Shown here piece after piece: positions 1,460-46,091 of a stretch of 64,000 bases of DNA; position 1 is the first letter of the stretch, and the number at the start of each line of letters is the position of its first letter. The notes beneath the pieces are model-generated. The model did no database searches and was not told where the DNA came from. It was given only the letters and a program-made list of their open reading frames with translations. Origin of the DNA: Epithemia pelagica (taxonomy: Eukaryota > Protista > Bacillariophyta); contig OX337228.1 of NCBI GenBank assembly GCA_946965045.2, positions 3,720,001 to 3,784,000 of the forward strand. Reading direction: 5' to 3'. Made by a program: the position numbers and the translations under genes.

Positions 1460-1570
1460 TACCCCTAGCGGAAGGGTGAGTCCTGGTCGTGAATGAGAGA
1501 GGGAGCATTCTGATACTCATTGCACACCACTGTCATTCACACGCACGACTCACCCTTCCGCTAGGGGGTA
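1460..1570. mobile_element. 111-bp MITE with Academ-like termini
   Basis: Left TIR TACCCCTAGCGGAAGGGTGAGTC (1460-1482) and right TIR GACTCACCCTTCCGCTAGGGGGTA (1547-1570); an imperfect match continues inward. A 10-bp direct repeat GGTGATGGTG flanks it at 1450-1459 and 1571-1580. The termini resemble those of the element at 41436-45911. Confidence 0.85.
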
Positions 1571-2434: not shown

Positions 2435-4744
2435 GTGGGTAAAAGTACAGTCAATACAACCTTACAACCAACCATCACAAATTCAAGAGAGCGACAAAAG
2501 AGCAACAATCATCCCTACTGGCGAACAACAAATTTCTACAAGACAAACAGGATGCCTCGAACCAAGAATGACTACAAACCCTACCTTGTTGCAATGATGA
2601 GCCATCTGGATGGATGGACCTACAGCCGAGGAACGCAGTTCTCAAGGGAGCAGTTGTTGCGACTCAAACCAGTAGACATAGTGAGATGGATGAATTTCAA
2701 GACGTTTGGGGTTGATGATCCACCAATTGATGCCAATCCAACACATGCACGCTCATCATCAATACTATATTGGAAGAAGGCCATTTCATCGTTCATGCCA
2801 TGCCGACTTCCGCACTGGAATGAAGAATCTTTGTCTGGCAACCCAACAAAGTCCCAAGAGGTTAATGACCTTATTACGCGCGTGAGAAAGAAGGAAGTTC
2901 GCAAGCAAGGAGTTGAGTCGAAAGCTCGCCGTCCTTTGACCGAGGGTGAGTTCCGCCAGGTGCAGATCATCCTTCGAGAGAGTCCAGAGAATGGCCACAT
3001 AACTCGGTATGGCATACCAGGTTTTGTGAATTTTCTAAGTCACATGATTGCACGCCCTGACTGCGTGAGCCAGTGGAAAAAAGAGCTCCTAGAGCCACAT
3101 GATGTTTATCCTGAGTTTGCTGTCAAGGCGCAACTCTCATGGGCTAAGAATGTGCAACAAGAGGGAGACGCACCATGGCAGATTGTTCTTGGCTCTCGGG
3201 ATCCATTTTTCTGTGTTTTCATTGGCCTTGCCATATGGCTTGAGTTTTATCTATCAAGTCAATCGGGCCCTTTATTGACTCCCTATGTTTTCGCATTCAC
3301 AACGGACACAAGAGTACCCAAAGGAGGTGAAGCAACAAATGACTATGTCCGAGAAGTGCTGACCAAACTCTATGCCAGCAGTGAATTTGTTAGAGAGCGT
3401 GGTGGGCTATTGGGAGCTTATAGTATACGCAAATTTGGCTCAACAAGAGCTAGGCGAGGAGGTGCATCAAAGGATGAAAAGGACTATAGAGGTCGCTGGA
3501 AGAAGAATCGCCGCGTTTCGGATGTCTATGATGACGCTGAACTGCCATACCCAGATGGCAAGGTTGCGGCATTGTTGTGTCCAGGAGGACCCTGCAGCTA
3601 CCGAATCAAGACAAACAGTTGTGTCACGAATGATTGGATACTAGATCATGTTGTGCCATCTATTGCTGGCTCTGTGTACGGAAGGACTTTAGCTACAATT
3701 TTGGGGAAGGCTCTTCTATGGGTAATTTTTTCAGACAAGAAACACTGGGTCCCTCCAGCAATTGTTGCCCGCGTAACTGATGCATATAGAGAGCTTGTGG
3801 GTGAAGAGGATACATCAGGAGCCCTTGCTAATCCTGTGGAAAAGAAACTTCTTGTTGTCACTGGTGATGACGCAACGCTTGTCATAACCGAAATCAATGC
3901 GACACCAGCTGCTGCATCACTTGGGGTTTCAACAGCTCCTGCACCAGCGCAAGACAATAATGTTGAAGGGCAAGCGCCCATTCCGAATGATGAACCACCC
4001 TTGCAGCAACCAGTTGTCTTGGGAGGACACATGGAGAGCCAGACTTCCCGGCAACTGCTTCATACGATTGTCAACCAACTCAACACAATCCAGTCTTCTA
4101 TGTCAGCAATGGCTGAATCCATTGTAGAAGGAAGAGAAACTGACAGAGCAATGATGCAGAGTCAGTTTCGAATCGTTCACTCAAACATGCGCCGCATTTC
4201 TCAGGAACCACTCCGCCTCTTGCGTCGTGCAATACGAGGAAACAATCAACAAAATGGAAATCAAAGAAACAATCATGCCAACAATAATAATGAGAACAAT
4301 GCACCAGTATATCAGAATAATTTTGGAGGTAATGGTGCTGGTGGTGCTGTTCTTGCGGGTGGACAGCCACTTGGTGAGCAGCATGGTGCAGAAAATTTTG
4401 ATGGTGATGCTGTCGGAGTGGCAAACCCACAAGTGCTTGCAGAGCTTTCTCCAACTCCAAGAAACTTGTACACTCTCTGGGAGGAATACATGGTAGGGAT
4501 TGGTGGTAGAAAACCTGCAAGGATGTTTAGCAGACAGGAAAGAGGCCGGTGTAAGCACAAGTATCACAGAAGAAAAATTGTTTGGGATCGGATTGCACTG
4601 TTAATCAATGCTGGACTTACTTCACACATGGCCTGTGACAGAATTTATGATGTGTATGGCCATGGAGCCACGGTCACAACAATCATCAATGCTCTCAAAA
4701 AAGATATTAGAGAGAATTCACTTGATGACAGGTTAAGAGTATGA
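2435..4744 (+). CDS. Crypton tyrosine recombinase with C-terminal GCR1_C-like domain (copy 1, 769 aa)
   Basis: YR-like motifs MIARPD (R), LGAYSIRKFG (HxxR position), RGRWK (W) and DVYDD (Y). The C-terminus LSPTPRNLYTLWEEYMVGIGGRKPAR...KYHRRKIVWD is typical of the GCR1_C-like domain of stramenopile Cryptons. Confidence 0.85.
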   Translation: MGKSTVNTTLQPTITNSRERQKSNNHPYWRTTNFYKTNRMPRTKNDYKPYLVAMMSHLDGWTYSRGTQFSREQLLRLKPVDIVRWMNFKTFGVDDPPIDANPTHARSSSILYWKKAISSFMPCRLPHWNEESLSGNPTKSQEVNDLITRVRKKEVRKQGVESKARRPLTEGEFRQVQIILRESPENGHITRYGIPGFVNFLSHMIARPDCVSQWKKELLEPHDVYPEFAVKAQLSWAKNVQQEGDAPWQIVLGSRDPFFCVFIGLAIWLEFYLSSQSGPLLTPYVFAFTTDTRVPKGGEATNDYVREVLTKLYASSEFVRERGGLLGAYSIRKFGSTRARRGGASKDEKDYRGRWKKNRRVSDVYDDAELPYPDGKVAALLCPGGPCSYRIKTNSCVTNDWILDHVVPSIAGSVYGRTLATILGKALLWVIFSDKKHWVPPAIVARVTDAYRELVGEEDTSGALANPVEKKLLVVTGDDATLVITEINATPAAASLGVSTAPAPAQDNNVEGQAPIPNDEPPLQQPVVLGGHMESQTSRQLLHTIVNQLNTIQSSMSAMAESIVEGRETDRAMMQSQFRIVHSNMRRISQEPLRLLRRAIRGNNQQNGNQRNNHANNNNENNAPVYQNNFGGNGAGGAVLAGGQPLGEQHGAENFDGDAVGVANPQVLAELSPTPRNLYTLWEEYMVGIGGRKPARMFSRQERGRCKHKYHRRKIVWDRIALLINAGLTSHMACDRIYDVYGHGATVTTIINALKKDIRENSLDDRLRV

Positions 4745-5156: not shown

Positions 5157-7466
5157 GTGGGTAAAAGTACAGTCAATACAACCTTACAACCAACCATCAC
5201 AAATTCAAGAGAGCGACAAAAGAGCAACAACCATCCCTACTGGCGAACAACAAATTTCTACAAGACAAACAGGATGCCTCGAACCAAGAATGACTACAAA
5301 CCCTACCTTGTTGCAATGATGAGCCATCTGGATGGATGGACCTACAGCCGAGGAACGCAGTTCTCAAGGGAGCAGTTGTTGCGACTCAAACCAGTAGACA
5401 TAGTGAGATGGATGAATTTCAAGACGTTTGGGGTTGATGATCCACCAATTGATGCCAATCCAACACATGCACGCTCATCATCAATACTATATTGGAAGAA
5501 GGCCATTTCATCGTTCATGCCATGCCGACTTCCGCACTGGAATGAAGAATCTTTGTCTGGCAACCCAACAAAGTCCCAAGAGGTTAATGACCTTATTACG
5601 CGCGTGAGAAAGAAGGAAGTTCGCAAGCAAGGAGTTGAGTCGAAAGCTCGCCGTCCTTTGACCGAGGGTGAGTTCCGCCAGGTGCAGATCATCCTTCGAG
5701 AGAGTCCAGAGAATGGCCACATAACTCGGTATGGCATACCAGGTTTTGTGAATTTTCTAAGTCACATGATTGCACGCCCTGACTGCGTGAGCCAGTGGAA
5801 AAAAGAGCTCCTAGAGCCACATGATGTTTATCCTGAGTTTGCTGTCAAGGCGCAACTCTCATGGGCTAAGAATGTGCAACAAGAGGGAGACGCACCATGG
5901 CAGATTGTTCTTGGCTCTCGGGATCCATTTTTCTGTGTTTTCATTGGCCTTGCCATATGGCTTGAGTTTTATCTATCAAGTCAATCGGGCCCTTTATTGA
6001 CTCCCTATGTTTTCGCATTCACAACGGACACAAGAGTACCCAAAGGAGGTGAAGCAACAAATGACTATGTCCGAGAAGTGCTGACCAAACTCTATGCCAG
6101 CAGTGAATTTGTTAGAGAGCGTGGTGGGCTATTGGGAGCTTATAGTATACGCAAATTTGGCTCAACAAGAGCTAGGCGAGGAGGTGCATCAAAGGATGAA
6201 AAGGACTATAGAGGTCGCTGGAAGAAGAATCGCCGCGTTTCGGATGTCTATGATGACGCTGAACTGCCATACCCAGATGGCAAGGTTGCGGCATTGTTGT
6301 GTCCAGGAGGACCCTGCAGCTACCGAATCAAGACAAACAGTTGTGTCACGAATGATTGGATACTAGATCATGTTGTGCCATCTATTGCTGGCTCTGTGTA
6401 CGGAAGGACTTTAGCTACAATTTTGGGGAAGGCTCTTCTATGGGTAATTTTTTCAGACAAGAAACACTGGGTCCCTCCAGCAATTGTTGCCCGCGTAACT
6501 GATGCATATAGAGAGCTTGTGGGTGAAGAGGATACATCAGGAGCCCTTGCTAATCCTGTGGAAAAGAAACTTCTTGTTGTCACTGGTGATGACGCAACGC
6601 TTGTCATAACCGAAATCAATGCGACACCAGCTGCTGCATCACTTGGGGTTTCAACAGCTCCTGCACCAGCGCAAGACAATAATGTTGAAGGGCAAGCGCC
6701 CATTCCGAATGATGAACCACCCTTGCAGCAACCAGTTGTCTTGGGAGGACACATGGAGAGCCAGACTTCCCGGCAACTGCTTCATACGATTGTCAACCAA
6801 CTCAACACAATCCAGTCTTCTATGTCAGCAATGGCTGAATCCATTGTAGAAGGAAGAGAAACTGACAGAGCAATGATGCAGAGTCAGTTTCGAATCGTTC
6901 ACTCAAACATGCGCCGCATTTCTCAGGAACCACTCCGCCTCTTGCGTCGTGCAATACGAGGAAACAATCAACAAAATGGAAATCAAAGAAACAATCATGC
7001 CAACAATAATAATGAGAACAATGCACCAGTATATCAGAATAATTTTGGAGGTAATGGTGCTGGTGGTGCTGTTCTTGCGGGTGGACAGCCACTTGGTGAG
7101 CAGCATGGTGCAGAAAATTTTGATGGTGATGCTGTCGGAGTGGCAAACCCACAAGTGCTTGCAGAGCTTTCTCCAACTCCAAGAAACTTGTACACTCTCT
7201 GGGAGGAATACATGGTAGGGATTGGTGGTAGAAAACCTGCAAGGATGTTTAGCAGACAGGAAAGAGGCCGGTGTAAGCACAAGTATCACAGAAGAAAAAT
7301 TGTTTGGGATCGGATTGCACTGTTAATCAATGCTGGACTTACTTCACACATGGCCTGTGACAGAATTTATGATGTGTATGGCCATGGAGCCACGGTCACA
7401 ACAATCATCAATGCTCTCAAAAAAGATATTAGAGAGAATTCACTTGATTACAGGTTAAGAGTATGA
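5157..7466 (+). CDS. Crypton tyrosine recombinase with GCR1_C-like domain (copy 2, 769 aa)
   Basis: Same protein as copy 1 apart from a D/Y change near the C-terminus (SLDDRLRV vs SLDYRLRV). Confidence 0.85.
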   Translation: MGKSTVNTTLQPTITNSRERQKSNNHPYWRTTNFYKTNRMPRTKNDYKPYLVAMMSHLDGWTYSRGTQFSREQLLRLKPVDIVRWMNFKTFGVDDPPIDANPTHARSSSILYWKKAISSFMPCRLPHWNEESLSGNPTKSQEVNDLITRVRKKEVRKQGVESKARRPLTEGEFRQVQIILRESPENGHITRYGIPGFVNFLSHMIARPDCVSQWKKELLEPHDVYPEFAVKAQLSWAKNVQQEGDAPWQIVLGSRDPFFCVFIGLAIWLEFYLSSQSGPLLTPYVFAFTTDTRVPKGGEATNDYVREVLTKLYASSEFVRERGGLLGAYSIRKFGSTRARRGGASKDEKDYRGRWKKNRRVSDVYDDAELPYPDGKVAALLCPGGPCSYRIKTNSCVTNDWILDHVVPSIAGSVYGRTLATILGKALLWVIFSDKKHWVPPAIVARVTDAYRELVGEEDTSGALANPVEKKLLVVTGDDATLVITEINATPAAASLGVSTAPAPAQDNNVEGQAPIPNDEPPLQQPVVLGGHMESQTSRQLLHTIVNQLNTIQSSMSAMAESIVEGRETDRAMMQSQFRIVHSNMRRISQEPLRLLRRAIRGNNQQNGNQRNNHANNNNENNAPVYQNNFGGNGAGGAVLAGGQPLGEQHGAENFDGDAVGVANPQVLAELSPTPRNLYTLWEEYMVGIGGRKPARMFSRQERGRCKHKYHRRKIVWDRIALLINAGLTSHMACDRIYDVYGHGATVTTIINALKKDIRENSLDYRLRV

Positions 7467-41227: not shown

Positions 41228-41464
41228 GCACATAGATCACACCCCAACTGGACGTATTCTCCATCAGAAAGACTGGCTAAGGAGCCCCAATTCTTCCTTC
41301 CAAAATTAATTCTCGTTTTCGTTCTAGGCTCGTAATGAGAAACCCAGGGTTGAAAGTGGACAAGGTGCCTTCATGGCCGCTTTTGTTGATTGCTGTCTCT
41401 GTCAAGATTCTCGATAGCTTCTTACGGATAGGAATTACCCCCCAGCGGGGGCGAGTATTTACCG

Positions 41465-43726
41465 GTGAATTCCTATACTCGCGTCCCTCGAAATCGGCGA
41501 TTTTCCAACTTTGAGACAAAACCACATTCTGCACAACACATTCATCACGGAGCCAACCTTGTCGTCCATATAACAACCACCATGGACCCTCCCAATCCCA
41601 TCCGACCACATAACATCGTTCCTTCGGCTGTTACAGAACATTCGACGCACTTGGATCCGCACCCTTTCCATCCGACGACGTCCTCCCAGCACACTGAATC
41701 TGACACGGAACGAACAGCCAACAACGAAACGGATGTCCCATCCTATGAAGCCACCATCGATGCCCTTTCCTCATTCAATGCCTTCTCGACCATCCCTTGT
41801 GATCCCTTGTCCAACGTTGGTGACCATAGGAAACTCTCCGAGTCCATAACGATGTGCTTCAGCGATTGGCATGGCAAGACTGCGCGACAATGGCAAATCA
41901 AAGCTTGCGAAGAAGTTCTTTGGCGGCACCTCCACCGCCCGTCTTCTGCCCTTTTGCGTCCTCTACTGCTTGTCCGGTCTACAGGCGGCGGAAAGTCGGC
42001 TGTAAGGGATGTCAGTGGTTTTCTCTGTGGCGGCATTACGTTAACCATAGTCCCTCTGCTAAGCTTGTCAGCCGACCAAACGGCAAAGCTCTCCCAACTC
42101 GCAAGCGATCAACAATTAACCGGTCGGCTACATATTTTTAACCTCGACGTACTCCGATCCAAGTCTCTCAACGACACCCTTCGTTCCAATCTGGAGAACT
42201 TATCGTACAAGTCAGCAACCAGAGTGTCGTTGTTCTCCTCCCCTCAGAAATTGACCAACGACCCCTTGTGGCAAGAAACAATCTGTACTTGCTTCCGGAA
42301 CGGTACCCTCCGGTTGATTGCGATCGACGAATGCCACCTTTATGCCTCCCATGGTGTGGAGTTCCGATCGGAATTCAGCGAGTTGAAGAAGGTTCTTTTC
42401 GCAGTTGCCAACCGGCGGATCATCAAAGAACCCGTCCCAGTTCTTTTCATGACAGCTACCGCTTCCTCTTTGATGCTCCACGATCTTGAATCATTGACCG
42501 GTCTCTCTTTTCACCCAACCGACGACCTTGTGTGGCCGCGACACCATTCCGGTGTCCAAAGACGCAACATCTTTCTTGATTTGACGTTCCAAGACTCGCC
42601 CCTTCGGCGAATCAAAAGGGACGTTGTAAAAACCTGCCACGCCTCTGGAGGTCGGAAAGTTATGGTTTATTCTAATTCGAGAAAGGCCATCACTCATCTC
42701 TACGAGCAAACCCGTTCTCATCTGAATATGCTCGGCATACAGAAAGACCTATTGCTTGTTCACGGCCTTATGTTCCGTGAACAAAAGTTCCATAACACGG
42801 AGCTGTTTGTGGGGAAGCCACTAGTGGAGGAATGCCCCAGCTCGAAACGGATCCTGCGCTTCAACCCAGTGGCTTACTTTGCAACTGCGGGTACTTCGAG
42901 CTCAGGTGTAGACTGCCACGAAGTTGACCGTGTGTTGTTTCATGGATTTCCTCAGTCCATAGAGGATCTCCTACAATGTTCTGGGCGATGTGGCAGAGGC
43001 CCGGACGCCACTGCCCATAATTCTTCGTTCTGTCTCATAGTCAGTCTGAACAGCCTTGTGTCCCTTCTTACTCGAATCTTTATCTTACCCAAGTATGCGA
43101 CAGAACAAAACATCAAGCAACCCCCTTCCAGCGAAGCAACAAACTCTATTTTCTCTCGTGAAGCTCTTGCTATCCGTCAATGGTATAATGTCCGCCAAAT
43201 TCTTGCTATCTTGTGCTTGGATGATGGTCAGTGTGTCCATTACCGTCTTGAACAAGAGATGCTTCATCCTCATAGCGATTCGGTTTGTGATCTACCAACG
43301 CATTGCGCTGGGGCCTGCTGGCGCTGCCGTACACCTCGGATTGCCACACCTTTTGATGCTCCTATCAATATCCAACAACTCAAACGATACCTCATTATGA
43401 TGTTCATTACCCAAAAGCTTCCCCCCTCCCAACTGCTCCTACACAAGGATGTCTTCCTTGATGCCGTGATTGGATTCGAAACGGTCAATGCTGAAGGAGC
43501 CTCGACACGAGTCTTTCCTAAATCGGTGTTTGGTGTCACCACCAAACATGTCATTAAGCAACGAACGAAAGCGCTCATTTTGAAGTGTTTCTGTGCTGGG
43601 ATCCTTGAACCCGAAGTAGATGGTTCCAAGTTGCTCGCTAAACTCGGGTACTGCTCCAATGGCAATCCACGCCTAAATGACCCAATGATCTGGCAAGGAT
43701 TCAAGGAACTCGATCCATCGGTCTAA
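41465..43726 (+). CDS. Transposon-borne RecQ-like SF2 helicase (likely ATG at 41581)
   Basis: Walker A RSTGGGKS, IAIDECH, FMTATA, FATAGTSSSGVD and LQCSGRCGRG; C-terminal Cys cluster (C...CAGACWRC) resembling the RecQ zinc-binding region. Confidence 0.88.
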   Translation: MNSYTRVPRNRRFSNFETKPHSAQHIHHGANLVVHITTTMDPPNPIRPHNIVPSAVTEHSTHLDPHPFHPTTSSQHTESDTERTANNETDVPSYEATIDALSSFNAFSTIPCDPLSNVGDHRKLSESITMCFSDWHGKTARQWQIKACEEVLWRHLHRPSSALLRPLLLVRSTGGGKSAVRDVSGFLCGGITLTIVPLLSLSADQTAKLSQLASDQQLTGRLHIFNLDVLRSKSLNDTLRSNLENLSYKSATRVSLFSSPQKLTNDPLWQETICTCFRNGTLRLIAIDECHLYASHGVEFRSEFSELKKVLFAVANRRIIKEPVPVLFMTATASSLMLHDLESLTGLSFHPTDDLVWPRHHSGVQRRNIFLDLTFQDSPLRRIKRDVVKTCHASGGRKVMVYSNSRKAITHLYEQTRSHLNMLGIQKDLLLVHGLMFREQKFHNTELFVGKPLVEECPSSKRILRFNPVAYFATAGTSSSGVDCHEVDRVLFHGFPQSIEDLLQCSGRCGRGPDATAHNSSFCLIVSLNSLVSLLTRIFILPKYATEQNIKQPPSSEATNSIFSREALAIRQWYNVRQILAILCLDDGQCVHYRLEQEMLHPHSDSVCDLPTHCAGACWRCRTPRIATPFDAPINIQQLKRYLIMMFITQKLPPSQLLLHKDVFLDAVIGFETVNAEGASTRVFPKSVFGVTTKHVIKQRTKALILKCFCAGILEPEVDGSKLLAKLGYCSNGNPRLNDPMIWQGFKELDPSV

Positions 43727-43769
43727 CAAACTTTCTTAGTATTAACTACGAAATACATCGTCCATTTTT

Positions 43770-45734
43770 TCACGTTTCCATGTCCTCCTTGTACGAAGCC
43801 AGCATATCCATGCAACGGTCTAGACGATTTGCAACGCCTGTTGTCTCCCTTGTATTCTCTGTCCATTCCACGTTCGACTGATCCTCCTCCATACCTTCCA
43901 GCCTATGGTAAAGCTTGTAGCGCAGGAAATGATGGTCTCTTTCCTTTCGCGCTGCATCCCATTGAAGGGACGTTACAACTTGCTTTTCCCCCATACGTTC
44001 CACGGCTCCTGCAATAAAATCTGTCGTTGCCATCCTATTCATCTCCACAACCTTCATTCCCTTTATTGATGATTTCTCACGTAGTGTCTCCTTTGGTGAA
44101 TCTTTCTTATCCACGGAATTGTCTGTCTCTGGAGCACCGTCACTTCCCTCATCATTATCATCGTTGTCATCATCTTCGTTCGGAATTTCGTCTGCCTCCG
44201 CCTCCATATCATCAACTTGGGTTTCTTGCACTTCATCCTCGTCTCTTTCGTCTCGGACTTCGTCATGTTCCATGTTGCTTGTTGCCTCGGTATCCTCCAT
44301 CGTAACTGTTGTATCAACAACAGTCTCTTCGTCCTTGTAGTAACAAGGAGCATCCTTCTCGACTTCGACGAATACCGATTCGTCGTCACTAAAGCACGTG
44401 AGTTCATGGTTTATCGATGAACCATCGTCATCCATTACTTCAGCCAAGTCTATCTCTGAGTTCTCATCTGTTGTATCGCCCTCTTCTGCCCCATTCTTGC
44501 TCCCCTCCTCTTCATCTGGACCCTTGTCTTCATCTTCCTTGCACCGTTTAGATTTCCTCATGTTACGCATCATTGCGTCAACTTTCACTAGAACATACTT
44601 GTCCACCGCGTCGTTTTCAATTCGACCTTCGCCATTACGCCTCACTTTCTTATGTACCTCCATTGTCGTCGCATCCAAAGCCCTCCAAAAGCGGTCTTTG
44701 TCGACCACAATATTGAGGTTCTCCCTTACTTCGTGGCATTTCGCAAGCGTCAAAATTTCTGTCACTAGAACACGATTCAATCGACTGCTTGGACGAGTTG
44801 TTGTTTTATTGCGTTGTCCTGGGTCCGCCAGTGGTCCAGTCTCAGTAGTATTCGTGTCAATGTCAAACGAATTCTCTAACGACCGTTCGTTGTATTCGTA
44901 CTCAGCGTCGGCTCTCGTACGAGTGTAGAATTCCACGAAATGCTTTGCCCTCTGGCAGGCAGTGAGCATTTTGGAAACACGAACAAACGAAGCCTCAGTT
45001 CCGTTATGGTTCATACCTTTGAAAAAAGGCATTAAGCGCTCCATAATCTGGTCAAGCGCACTCTCTTTCTGGAACGTGTAAGGTGACCCTTTCTTTTGAA
45101 GTTTGGTTCTGTTGAGCCTGATGAGTTGCAGGATAGAAATAGGGATTCGATGATAGTACATCTCAATAAGACGAAGCTGAGTAGCGAACGATTTATGTTT
45201 CTTTGTTGCGTAGAGTACTGGCAAATAATCAACAACAACAGCTTCCATTGTCACCGCATCACCTTCTTGTTCTGCTTTACAAAATGCCAGGTACTTTCGC
45301 ATAACAACCAGATAGTTGCATAGGTACCGGTGCAACCAGTCCTTTGTCTCACGGACTTGGCGGTGCAAATAAGCCACGTAGTCGTTGGCTACAAAGATAG
45401 CCAATCCATCTGGCCCTTGTGATTTGAGGATTCGCTCAATCTTTCCAAACGTCATGGTTCTGTTGATGAAGATGTCAACCATAAGACGATCCAGTTCCTC
45501 GAAAACAATAACGGCAAGTCGATGAGCTAAACGATAGGTGTGTGACACATCTTGGGCATCGAGACGCTTCCATTTGAGCCTGTGCTGGAAGCACTGGAGG
45601 AAGCCTCCATAGAACAAGCGGTAAACGGAATCCAACATATGAAACCTAACATGTAGGTCTCCGTTAATAGGGACAATCCGGTGTAGGACCTGAGTGATTG
45701 CCATGGCCTGTCGGTATGCATTGCGAAATGACAT
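43770..45734 (-). CDS. Academ-like (DUF6589-like) transposase, apparently N-terminally truncated, with acidic tail
   Basis: IVPINGDLHVRFHML and ALDQIMERL resemble the G[LF]H and D...E motifs of Academ transposases. It lies inside the TIRs, opposite the helicase. The assignment is from recalled motifs, not a search. Confidence 0.6.
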   Translation of the reverse strand: MSFRNAYRQAMAITQVLHRIVPINGDLHVRFHMLDSVYRLFYGGFLQCFQHRLKWKRLDAQDVSHTYRLAHRLAVIVFEELDRLMVDIFINRTMTFGKIERILKSQGPDGLAIFVANDYVAYLHRQVRETKDWLHRYLCNYLVVMRKYLAFCKAEQEGDAVTMEAVVVDYLPVLYATKKHKSFATQLRLIEMYYHRIPISILQLIRLNRTKLQKKGSPYTFQKESALDQIMERLMPFFKGMNHNGTEASFVRVSKMLTACQRAKHFVEFYTRTRADAEYEYNERSLENSFDIDTNTTETGPLADPGQRNKTTTRPSSRLNRVLVTEILTLAKCHEVRENLNIVVDKDRFWRALDATTMEVHKKVRRNGEGRIENDAVDKYVLVKVDAMMRNMRKSKRCKEDEDKGPDEEEGSKNGAEEGDTTDENSEIDLAEVMDDDGSSINHELTCFSDDESVFVEVEKDAPCYYKDEETVVDTTVTMEDTEATSNMEHDEVRDERDEDEVQETQVDDMEAEADEIPNEDDDNDDNDEGSDGAPETDNSVDKKDSPKETLREKSSIKGMKVVEMNRMATTDFIAGAVERMGEKQVVTSLQWDAARKERDHHFLRYKLYHRLEGMEEDQSNVEWTENTRETTGVANRLDRCMDMLASYKEDMET

Positions 45735-46091
45735 GCGACGACGACGACATGGAGGAAGGCATATCAGGGAGCGGCACCTCCACTGCCGTGATAAAGGAGG
45801 TGAGATTGTGTGTGTGGTTTGGAGTTTTGTCTCAAAGTTGGGAGTTTCAGGACGCGCCGTGGGGGTGAGAAAGAGAATTCACATCGAAATTTCCACCCCC
45901 GCTGGGGGGTAGGATAGGAATTACGGATAGGAATTACGGATAGGAACACACGCGGCTCGCGCGCTCGTTTTTCGCCATCCCATCTCGAGTGTTGTCGCAT
46001 TTTTTGCGAAGCGAAGATCAAAGATATCTTTTCCATTTTCTTTCTCGCATCTCCTATTGACTGCAAGCTCTGACTGTTGCTGCTGAAGAAG

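Follow-up and report, generated by a model that had tools for sequence, protein, structure and literature searches.

To our knowledge, few DNA transposons have been studied as little as the Academ elements that carry a helicase. Their published range is animals and fungi, the groups from which the AcademH lineage was reportedly described. According to PMC10045372, AcademH elements make target site duplications (TSDs) of 9-10 bp and AcademX elements make TSDs of 3-4 bp, a difference that seems tied to the presence of a helicase in the former and a nuclease in the latter. Records of AcademH from Basidiomycota, Ascomycota and Mucoromycota are given in PMC10799480. Here, a 64,000-nucleotide stretch of the Epithemia pelagica contig OX337228.1 (positions 3,720,001 to 3,784,000; hereafter called the window, with position 1 as its first letter) was analysed, and an element of 4,476 bp spanning positions 41436-45911 was characterised. 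We consider it likely that this element belongs to a family of diatom cut-and-paste transposons that fits AcademH or a close sister, and that it is a copy with an internal deletion and without autonomy. A first-pass annotation of the window had proposed a stramenopile AcademH or a new sister lineage; the helicase, the 9-10-bp TSDs and the DUF6589 kinship reported below agree with that proposal and fit either option.

The two ends of the element carry identical 16-bp termini, TACCCCCCAGCGGGGG, which occur at exactly two sites in the window, 41436-41451 on the plus strand and 45896-45911 on the minus strand; with up to 3 mismatches allowed, approximately 0.15 matches would be expected by chance. 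Read across the element, the termini are TACCCCC...GGGGGTA, and the ends can be aligned over approximately 115 bp as patchy inverted repeats with conserved blocks. A perfect 10-bp TSD, GGATAGGAAT, directly abuts both termini. Both the long imperfect terminal inverted repeats (TIRs) and the 10-bp TSD had been noted in the first-pass annotation and were borne out. The TSD is to be read with one caveat, namely that the duplicated site was within, or gave rise to, a short repeat: the right flank (45912-45950) is a 13-bp tandem, (GGATAGGAAT+TAC) x3, the left flank (41422-41435) reads TTAC+GGATAGGAAT, and the first three bases of the element are also TAC. The (GGATAGGAAT+TAC) units may be footprints left by successive excisions from a site used more than once, or a 13-bp minisatellite that was there beforehand.

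Measured from the termini, the two inward-facing genes have their start codons at 147 bp (41436-41582) and 150 bp (45762-45911). Conservation across subfamilies extends, at both ends, to the terminus and three subterminal blocks, and the spacers in these terminus-to-start-codon stretches are end-specific; the TIRs may double as putative promoter/leader regions of both genes. At the helicase-side end of the window copy, 11 bp (CACCCCCACGG, after 41479) of the block ACTCACCCCCACGGCGCG are missing. This block is kept at both ends of every subfamily and also in a 98% identical sister copy (L001, see below), and the window copy may thereby have lost a binding site for the transposase.

Many DUF6589 genes of this genome are paired with a helicase gene that runs towards them. 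Complete members of the family measure 7.2-7.8 kb, and their convergent genes, each starting approximately 150 bp inside a TIR, encode a DUF6589 transposase of approximately 1,670 aa, with the aspartate-aspartate-glutamate (DDE) type of catalytic core, and a RecQ-fold helicase of approximately 700 aa. TIRs and 9-10-bp TSDs were found in four independent copies, the one in the window and those designated L002, L003 and L006 (Table 1), so that the search for other TIR-bounded copies, suggested as a check in the first-pass annotation, gave a positive result. Since the three other members carry unrelated perfect TSDs, a TSD of 9-10 bp is regarded as a property of the family and not as a chance repeat. 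L002 and L003 are frameshifted. In L006 both genes are intact, with a single transposase open reading frame (ORF) of 1,673 aa and a helicase ORF of 677 aa, and the helicase-side 16-bp terminus is identical to that of the window element.

The closest copy, L001, is 98.2% identical to the window element over 4.3 kb and has different flanks. Its transposase runs 237 aa further than the remnant in the window, where the ORF begins abruptly. No second TIR was found for L001 within 6 kb on the transposase side, and a Copia (RVT_2) element lies upstream of its transposase ORF (L001 1-6000); L001 is truncated at this side by an event separate from that in the window copy.

These copies bear on whether the locus is mobile at all. 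Standard annotation would give a host RecQ paralog and a hypothetical gene, which would here lie between chance repeats; the helicase ORF is indeed intact and the locus is situated between ordinary host genes. Against this stand the identical 16-bp inverted termini with their 10-bp TSD, a 98% copy elsewhere with other flanks, the same gene pair inside TIRs with its own TSDs at three more loci, a single clade of approximately 20 helicase paralogs, and a read depth of the element approximately twice that of its flanks. We regard a non-mobile pair of host genes as scarcely conceivable.

Two much shorter sequences with related ends were also seen. One is a 111-bp miniature element listed in Table 1, whose GGTGATGGTG flanks sit in a GGTGAT microsatellite, so that its duplication is ambiguous. 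The other, at L003 11883-11915 just outside the full-length L003 element, is a 33-bp mini-element (TACCCCCAGCG...CTGGGGGGTA) consisting of scarcely more than two termini, with flanks GCAGGGCTG and GCAGGGCCG.

Table 1. Coordinates of the element, its parts and related copies (positions refer to the window unless a locus is named; strand "." denotes none)
Feature	Locus	Positions	Strand	Details
Left TSD copy		41426-41435	.	GGATAGGAAT
Helicase-side TIR and subterminal region		41436-41550	+	terminal 16 bp = TACCCCCCAGCGGGGG
Helicase ORF		41582-43726	+	714 aa, intact
3' remnant of DUF6589 DDE transposase gene		43770-45734	-	654-aa ORF
Internal deletion junction		45733-45735	-	read-contig graph branches there
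Native transposase start region		45748-45762	-	ATG at 45762 and 45750, MPSSMSSSSH
Transposase-side TIR and subterminal region		45787-45911	-	every conserved block kept
Right TSD copy		45912-45921	.	GGATAGGAAT
Miniature element		1460-1570	.	111 bp, related termini TACCCCTAGCGGAAGGGTGAGT, GGTGATGGTG on both sides
Full-length copy	L002	5030-12786		7,757 bp, TSD CCGAGAAATT (10 bp)
Full-length copy	L003	4594-11829		7,236 bp, TSD CCACCGATGC (10 bp)
Full-length copy	L006	4858-12383		7,526 bp, TSD TGAGTCCAT (9 bp)

The first-pass annotation had taken the minus-strand ORF for a putative transposase gene and had placed the starts of both convergent genes just inside the TIRs. Its kinship with DUF6589 was upheld, and the helicase gene does start there; the minus-strand ORF is a 3' remnant and not a complete gene, with an internal Met, a native ATG out of frame and a deletion that had been missed. 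This ORF matches only the C-terminal half of DUF6589 (Pfam PF20231, profile positions 178-386 of 410), with a score of 17.4 bits where the gathering threshold is 27 bits. Residues 238-891 of P0001, a paralog encoded at another place in the assembly, match it at 98% identity, and because of this match the first Met of the ORF is considered internal (M238 of P0001). The remnant keeps the helix of the catalytic glutamate (ESALDQIMERL) and the acidic C-terminal part; the first aspartate (DNxQ) and the second (GDGLS), both invariant, are absent, as are the N-terminal approximately 1,000 aa found in the intact paralog.

Comparison with L002 and L003 showed that in the window copy the transposase-side end and leader are kept and lead straight into the central part of the transposase gene, with approximately 2.7-3.2 kb of 5' coding sequence gone. 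When the starts of L002, L003 and L006 were compared, the native start was found to be out of frame with the 654-aa ORF across the junction. At precisely 45733 and 45735 the read contigs part into two forms, that of the window and the longer one of L001, and the deletion junction, which has approximately 2 bp of microhomology, is considered real because the contigs branch exactly there. Because two of the three catalytic residues are lost and the remnant is out of frame, the window copy, an internally deleted derivative, is considered non-autonomous.

A window copy that is still autonomous, with the 654-aa ORF acting as a functional short transposase, has next to no probability in our estimation. 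In its favour, the ORF is long and open, and the ratio of nonsynonymous to synonymous substitution rates (dN/dS) between the window copy and L001 is 0.32 for the transposase remnant (0.58 for the helicase), values drawn from approximately 30 substitutions each that do not show selection on the window copy. The loss of the first and second catalytic aspartates together with the N-terminal approximately 1,000 aa, the frame that differs from that of the native start codon, and the partial deletion of one conserved end block all speak against it.

Full-length paralogs supplied what the remnant lacks. The proteins P0001, P0003, P0005, P0006, P0007 and P0179 passed the DUF6589 threshold (30-41 bits), in line with the profile comparison recommended in the first-pass annotation, and the core is predicted to fold as a DDE transposase. 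An AlphaFold model of the core of P0176 (residues 657-1359), built from a 34-sequence alignment, had a predicted local distance difference test (pLDDT) value of 85 and a predicted template modelling (pTM) score of 0.84. When this core was aligned with VIA-align, the P element transposase ranked first (Z 8.4, a middling value by the tool's own scale, with 355 residues aligned), with Hermes in second place (Z 7.2) and, further down, retroviral integrase cores, ISCth4, Tn5, RAG1 and Sleeping Beauty. The core residues D104, D347 and E602, which correspond to D760, D1003 and E1258 of P0176, are conserved in every aligned sequence spanning them and are positioned after strand 1, after strand 4 and on a helix past the insertion domain, respectively. 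Because DDE enzymes dominate the VIA-align list and this triad is conserved, the modelled core is read as an RNase-H-like DDE fold with a large helical insertion and a conserved D-D-E triad. For the N-terminal half of the transposase (approximately 650 aa), no Pfam family or PDB sequence match was found.

An Atlas shape search with the core returned DUF6589 clusters of Basidiomycota (TM score 0.60), Mucoromycota and Cnidaria, and then bacterial IS66 transposases; overall, the nearest DUF6589 protein clusters are those of Basidiomycota, Mucoromycota, Cnidaria and Arthropoda. When 1.84 billion representatives were searched with a profile built from the diatom transposases, 681 relatives had E<=1e-3. 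Two of the relatives, P0263 and P0324 (1,366-1,376 aa), are MMETSP transcripts of the dictyochophyte Pedinella sp. CCMP2098, and because of these transcripts the family is considered to be present and transcribed in a second ochrophyte class. Also among the relatives, the same layout of a transposase gene and a convergent helicase gene was observed in eukaryotic metagenome contigs from the Joint Genome Institute (L007 7636-14998, and L008), in which a 1,401-aa transposase and an 806-aa helicase, 29% identical to that of the window, are encoded between TIRs of approximately 180 bp starting CACACTGTAG.

The helicase gene of the window copy is complete. Its product contains the motifs GGGKS, DECH, TAT and QCSGRCGRG and a C-terminal zinc- and winged-helix-like region. 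Pfam matched it with DEAD and Helicase_C only, with no match to RecQ_Zn_bind, RQC or HRDC. In PDB its sequence matched RecQ-family entries only (best E 9e-9), and its model (pLDDT 82.5) aligned to whole RecQ catalytic cores at E approximately 1e-18 over approximately 630 columns, with fold matches confined to the RecQ family. The protein is predicted on this basis to be a RecQ-fold helicase of superfamily 2 (SF2), which agrees with the earlier description of a RecQ-like SF2 helicase on the plus strand.

In a quick maximum-likelihood tree, which included 14 RecQs but no diatom host RecQ, a long branch with 100% support separated the element-linked helicases from the RecQs. The window helicase paired with that of L001, and the helicase of the intact L006 element came next. 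Approximately 20 helicase paralogs in one genome form a single clade, and each adjoins a DUF6589 gene at the loci examined. The phylogenetic check put forward in the first-pass annotation therefore turned out in favour of a transposon-borne helicase: the radiation of paralogs, beside DUF6589 genes within TIRs, is far from canonical RecQ and does not represent the host enzyme.

The window locus corresponds to contig ctg1329l of ENA ERZ21939226 (99.98% identity over 16.5 kb), and the element was found in three sets of read contigs from the source organism. The flank contigs stop exactly at 41438 and resume exactly at 45912. Depth was 58 for the filled-junction contig (41409-41463) against 119 for the flank, and 87 for a window-specific internal contig against 160 for the flank. 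Because the breakpoints of the flank contigs, at a word length of 31 letters, and the junction depths fit a second, element-free allele, the insertion is probably hemizygous, with an empty allele in the sequenced strain. A long joint from 41469 to 45878 was considered as an empty site and rejected; it joins the two TIR arms, with 30 letters on the shorter side, and probably represents a short miniature relative.

Reads cover the element about twice as deeply as its flanks, in keeping with a small number of nearly identical copies. One read contig shares 45733-45911 exactly and has another flank, CCCGGCACCACATGAT, and a different continuation inside 45733, which indicates another copy with the same end in the genome. 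For this other continuation no protein match was found among the family proteins collected; the copy could be a full-length parent or another derivative.

The host is a raphid pennate diatom; the best named relatives of the flanking kinesin are from Epithemia (73%), Entomoneis and Fistulifera, and then from other diatoms. The element has a Polyketide_cyc2-like gene as neighbour on one side and an isochorismatase-like gene on the other. Elsewhere in the window, two tandem ORFs of 769 aa each were observed at 2435-4744 and 5157-7466.

Three of the four features taken as defining AcademH, namely a helicase, 9-10-bp TSDs and TIRs, were found in the family, and its assignment to AcademH or a close sister is supported by the match in features and taxon range, with Academ sequences known by description only. 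Several observations weigh against this reading of the family and of the window copy. The fourth feature, transposase homology, has DUF6589 and the overlap in taxon range as its sole backing, and a literature search for DUF6589 yielded no paper linking it to Academ or to transposons. Foldseek returned nothing significant for the transposase core against PDB, and the leading VIA-align score is the middling one given above. The distant relative L007 has an 8-bp TSD, ACTTACTC, outside the 9-10-bp range. As for the window copy, the dN/dS values are silent on selection, the element was found in no RNA run among those searched for it, and the read tables hold no contig joined across the empty site, the empty allele being read from breakpoints and depth.

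Some of these points would suit a separate DUF6589 lineage at the superfamily level that gained its own RecQ-like helicase and stands outside Academ and AcademH, DUF6589 perhaps not being the Academ transposase. The Academ kinship drawn here comes from descriptions and not from comparison with named sequences, the literature search has the outcome just mentioned, the transposase is very long and has an N-terminal region of approximately 650 aa that matches nothing in Pfam or PDB, and the distant relative has its 8-bp TSD; in addition, Kolobok lineages recruited RecQ-like helicases independently (PMC9587614). However, the taxa of the nearest DUF6589 clusters coincide with the AcademH range in the records that PMC10799480 gives for it, and AcademH is marked, according to PMC10045372, by a helicase combined with TSDs of 9-10 bp. 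We regard a separate lineage as unlikely, while giving it some weight. The supplements of PMC10799480 contain no mention of PF20231, and literature searches on diatoms, Phaeodactylum and stramenopiles yielded no report of Academ in these groups.

The transposase of the family would bind the conserved terminal and subterminal blocks, excise the element, and reinsert it by cuts staggered by 9-10 bp, and the helicase would serve as an accessory factor in end processing or repair. Abortive gap repair, with approximately 2 bp of microhomology at the junction, would account for the internal deletion, and the window copy would depend for its mobility on transposase from a full-length relative whose termini match. 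A more specific proposal sees in the elements of diatoms and other ochrophytes a sister lineage of AcademH that is separate and still active, marked by a transposase of approximately 1,670 aa whose N-terminal half is novel and by TIRs acting as mirror-image promoters/leaders; the (GGATAGGAAT+TAC) x3 array would then record repeated insertion and excision at a single site, each round leaving the TSD and the first three bases of the element. As a whole, this proposal is doubtful.

A multi-copy, partly intact family in a diatom would extend the range of helicase-carrying Academ elements to ochrophyte algae, and the Pedinella transcripts and metagenomic relatives agree with this extension. What is added is a host group for a kind of transposon already described, and the window copy brings no biology of its own. 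It does illustrate how the family decays: it has been deleted internally, has lost one end block and is probably hemizygous. Diatoms are transformable, and the family offers a test system for the role of the helicase in transposition and for whether it sets the 9-10-bp stagger. The locus also exposes an annotation pitfall, as such loci are otherwise labelled "RecQ helicase" and "hypothetical protein".

Compared with known systems, the transposase resembles those of the P element and Hermes (hAT) in having an RNase-H-like core interrupted by a large helical insertion. It differs from them in that sequence similarity is undetectable (7-11% identity in the structural alignment) and in that neither P element nor hAT encodes a helicase; the TSDs of both are 8 bp long. 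The P element and hAT belong to a group said to share Kolobok signatures (PMC9587614), and these structural matches could be taken to favour a KolobokH-like element, that is, a Kolobok transposon with a RecQ helicase. KolobokH elements are likewise DDE transposons with a RecQ-type helicase; that of the red-algal Kolobok-1_CCri is encoded on the complementary strand, as here, and Kolobok is known from a diatom (PMC9587614). By contrast, Kolobok makes 4-bp TTAA duplications and has RR/YY termini (PMC9587614), whereas the TSDs here are 9-10 bp, the termini are TA...TA, and the transposase is DUF6589 by Pfam. Because of the TTAA duplications in particular, we exclude KolobokH, leaving it only a very slight chance.

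AcademX elements presumably share the transposase superfamily, but they have an XPG nuclease and 3-4-bp TSDs in place of the RecQ-fold helicase and 9-10-bp TSDs seen here. From AcademH, the diatom family differs in its pennate host and dictyochophyte relatives, in the length of its transposase (approximately 1,670 aa) with an uncharacterised N-terminal half, in the 8-bp TSD of one distant relative, and, for the window copy itself, in the internal deletion. It shares with AcademH the TIR-bounded DDE transposon structure, a RecQ-like SF2 helicase encoded besides the transposase, TSDs of 9-10 bp, and nearest DUF6589 clusters that fall in the recorded host groups of AcademH.

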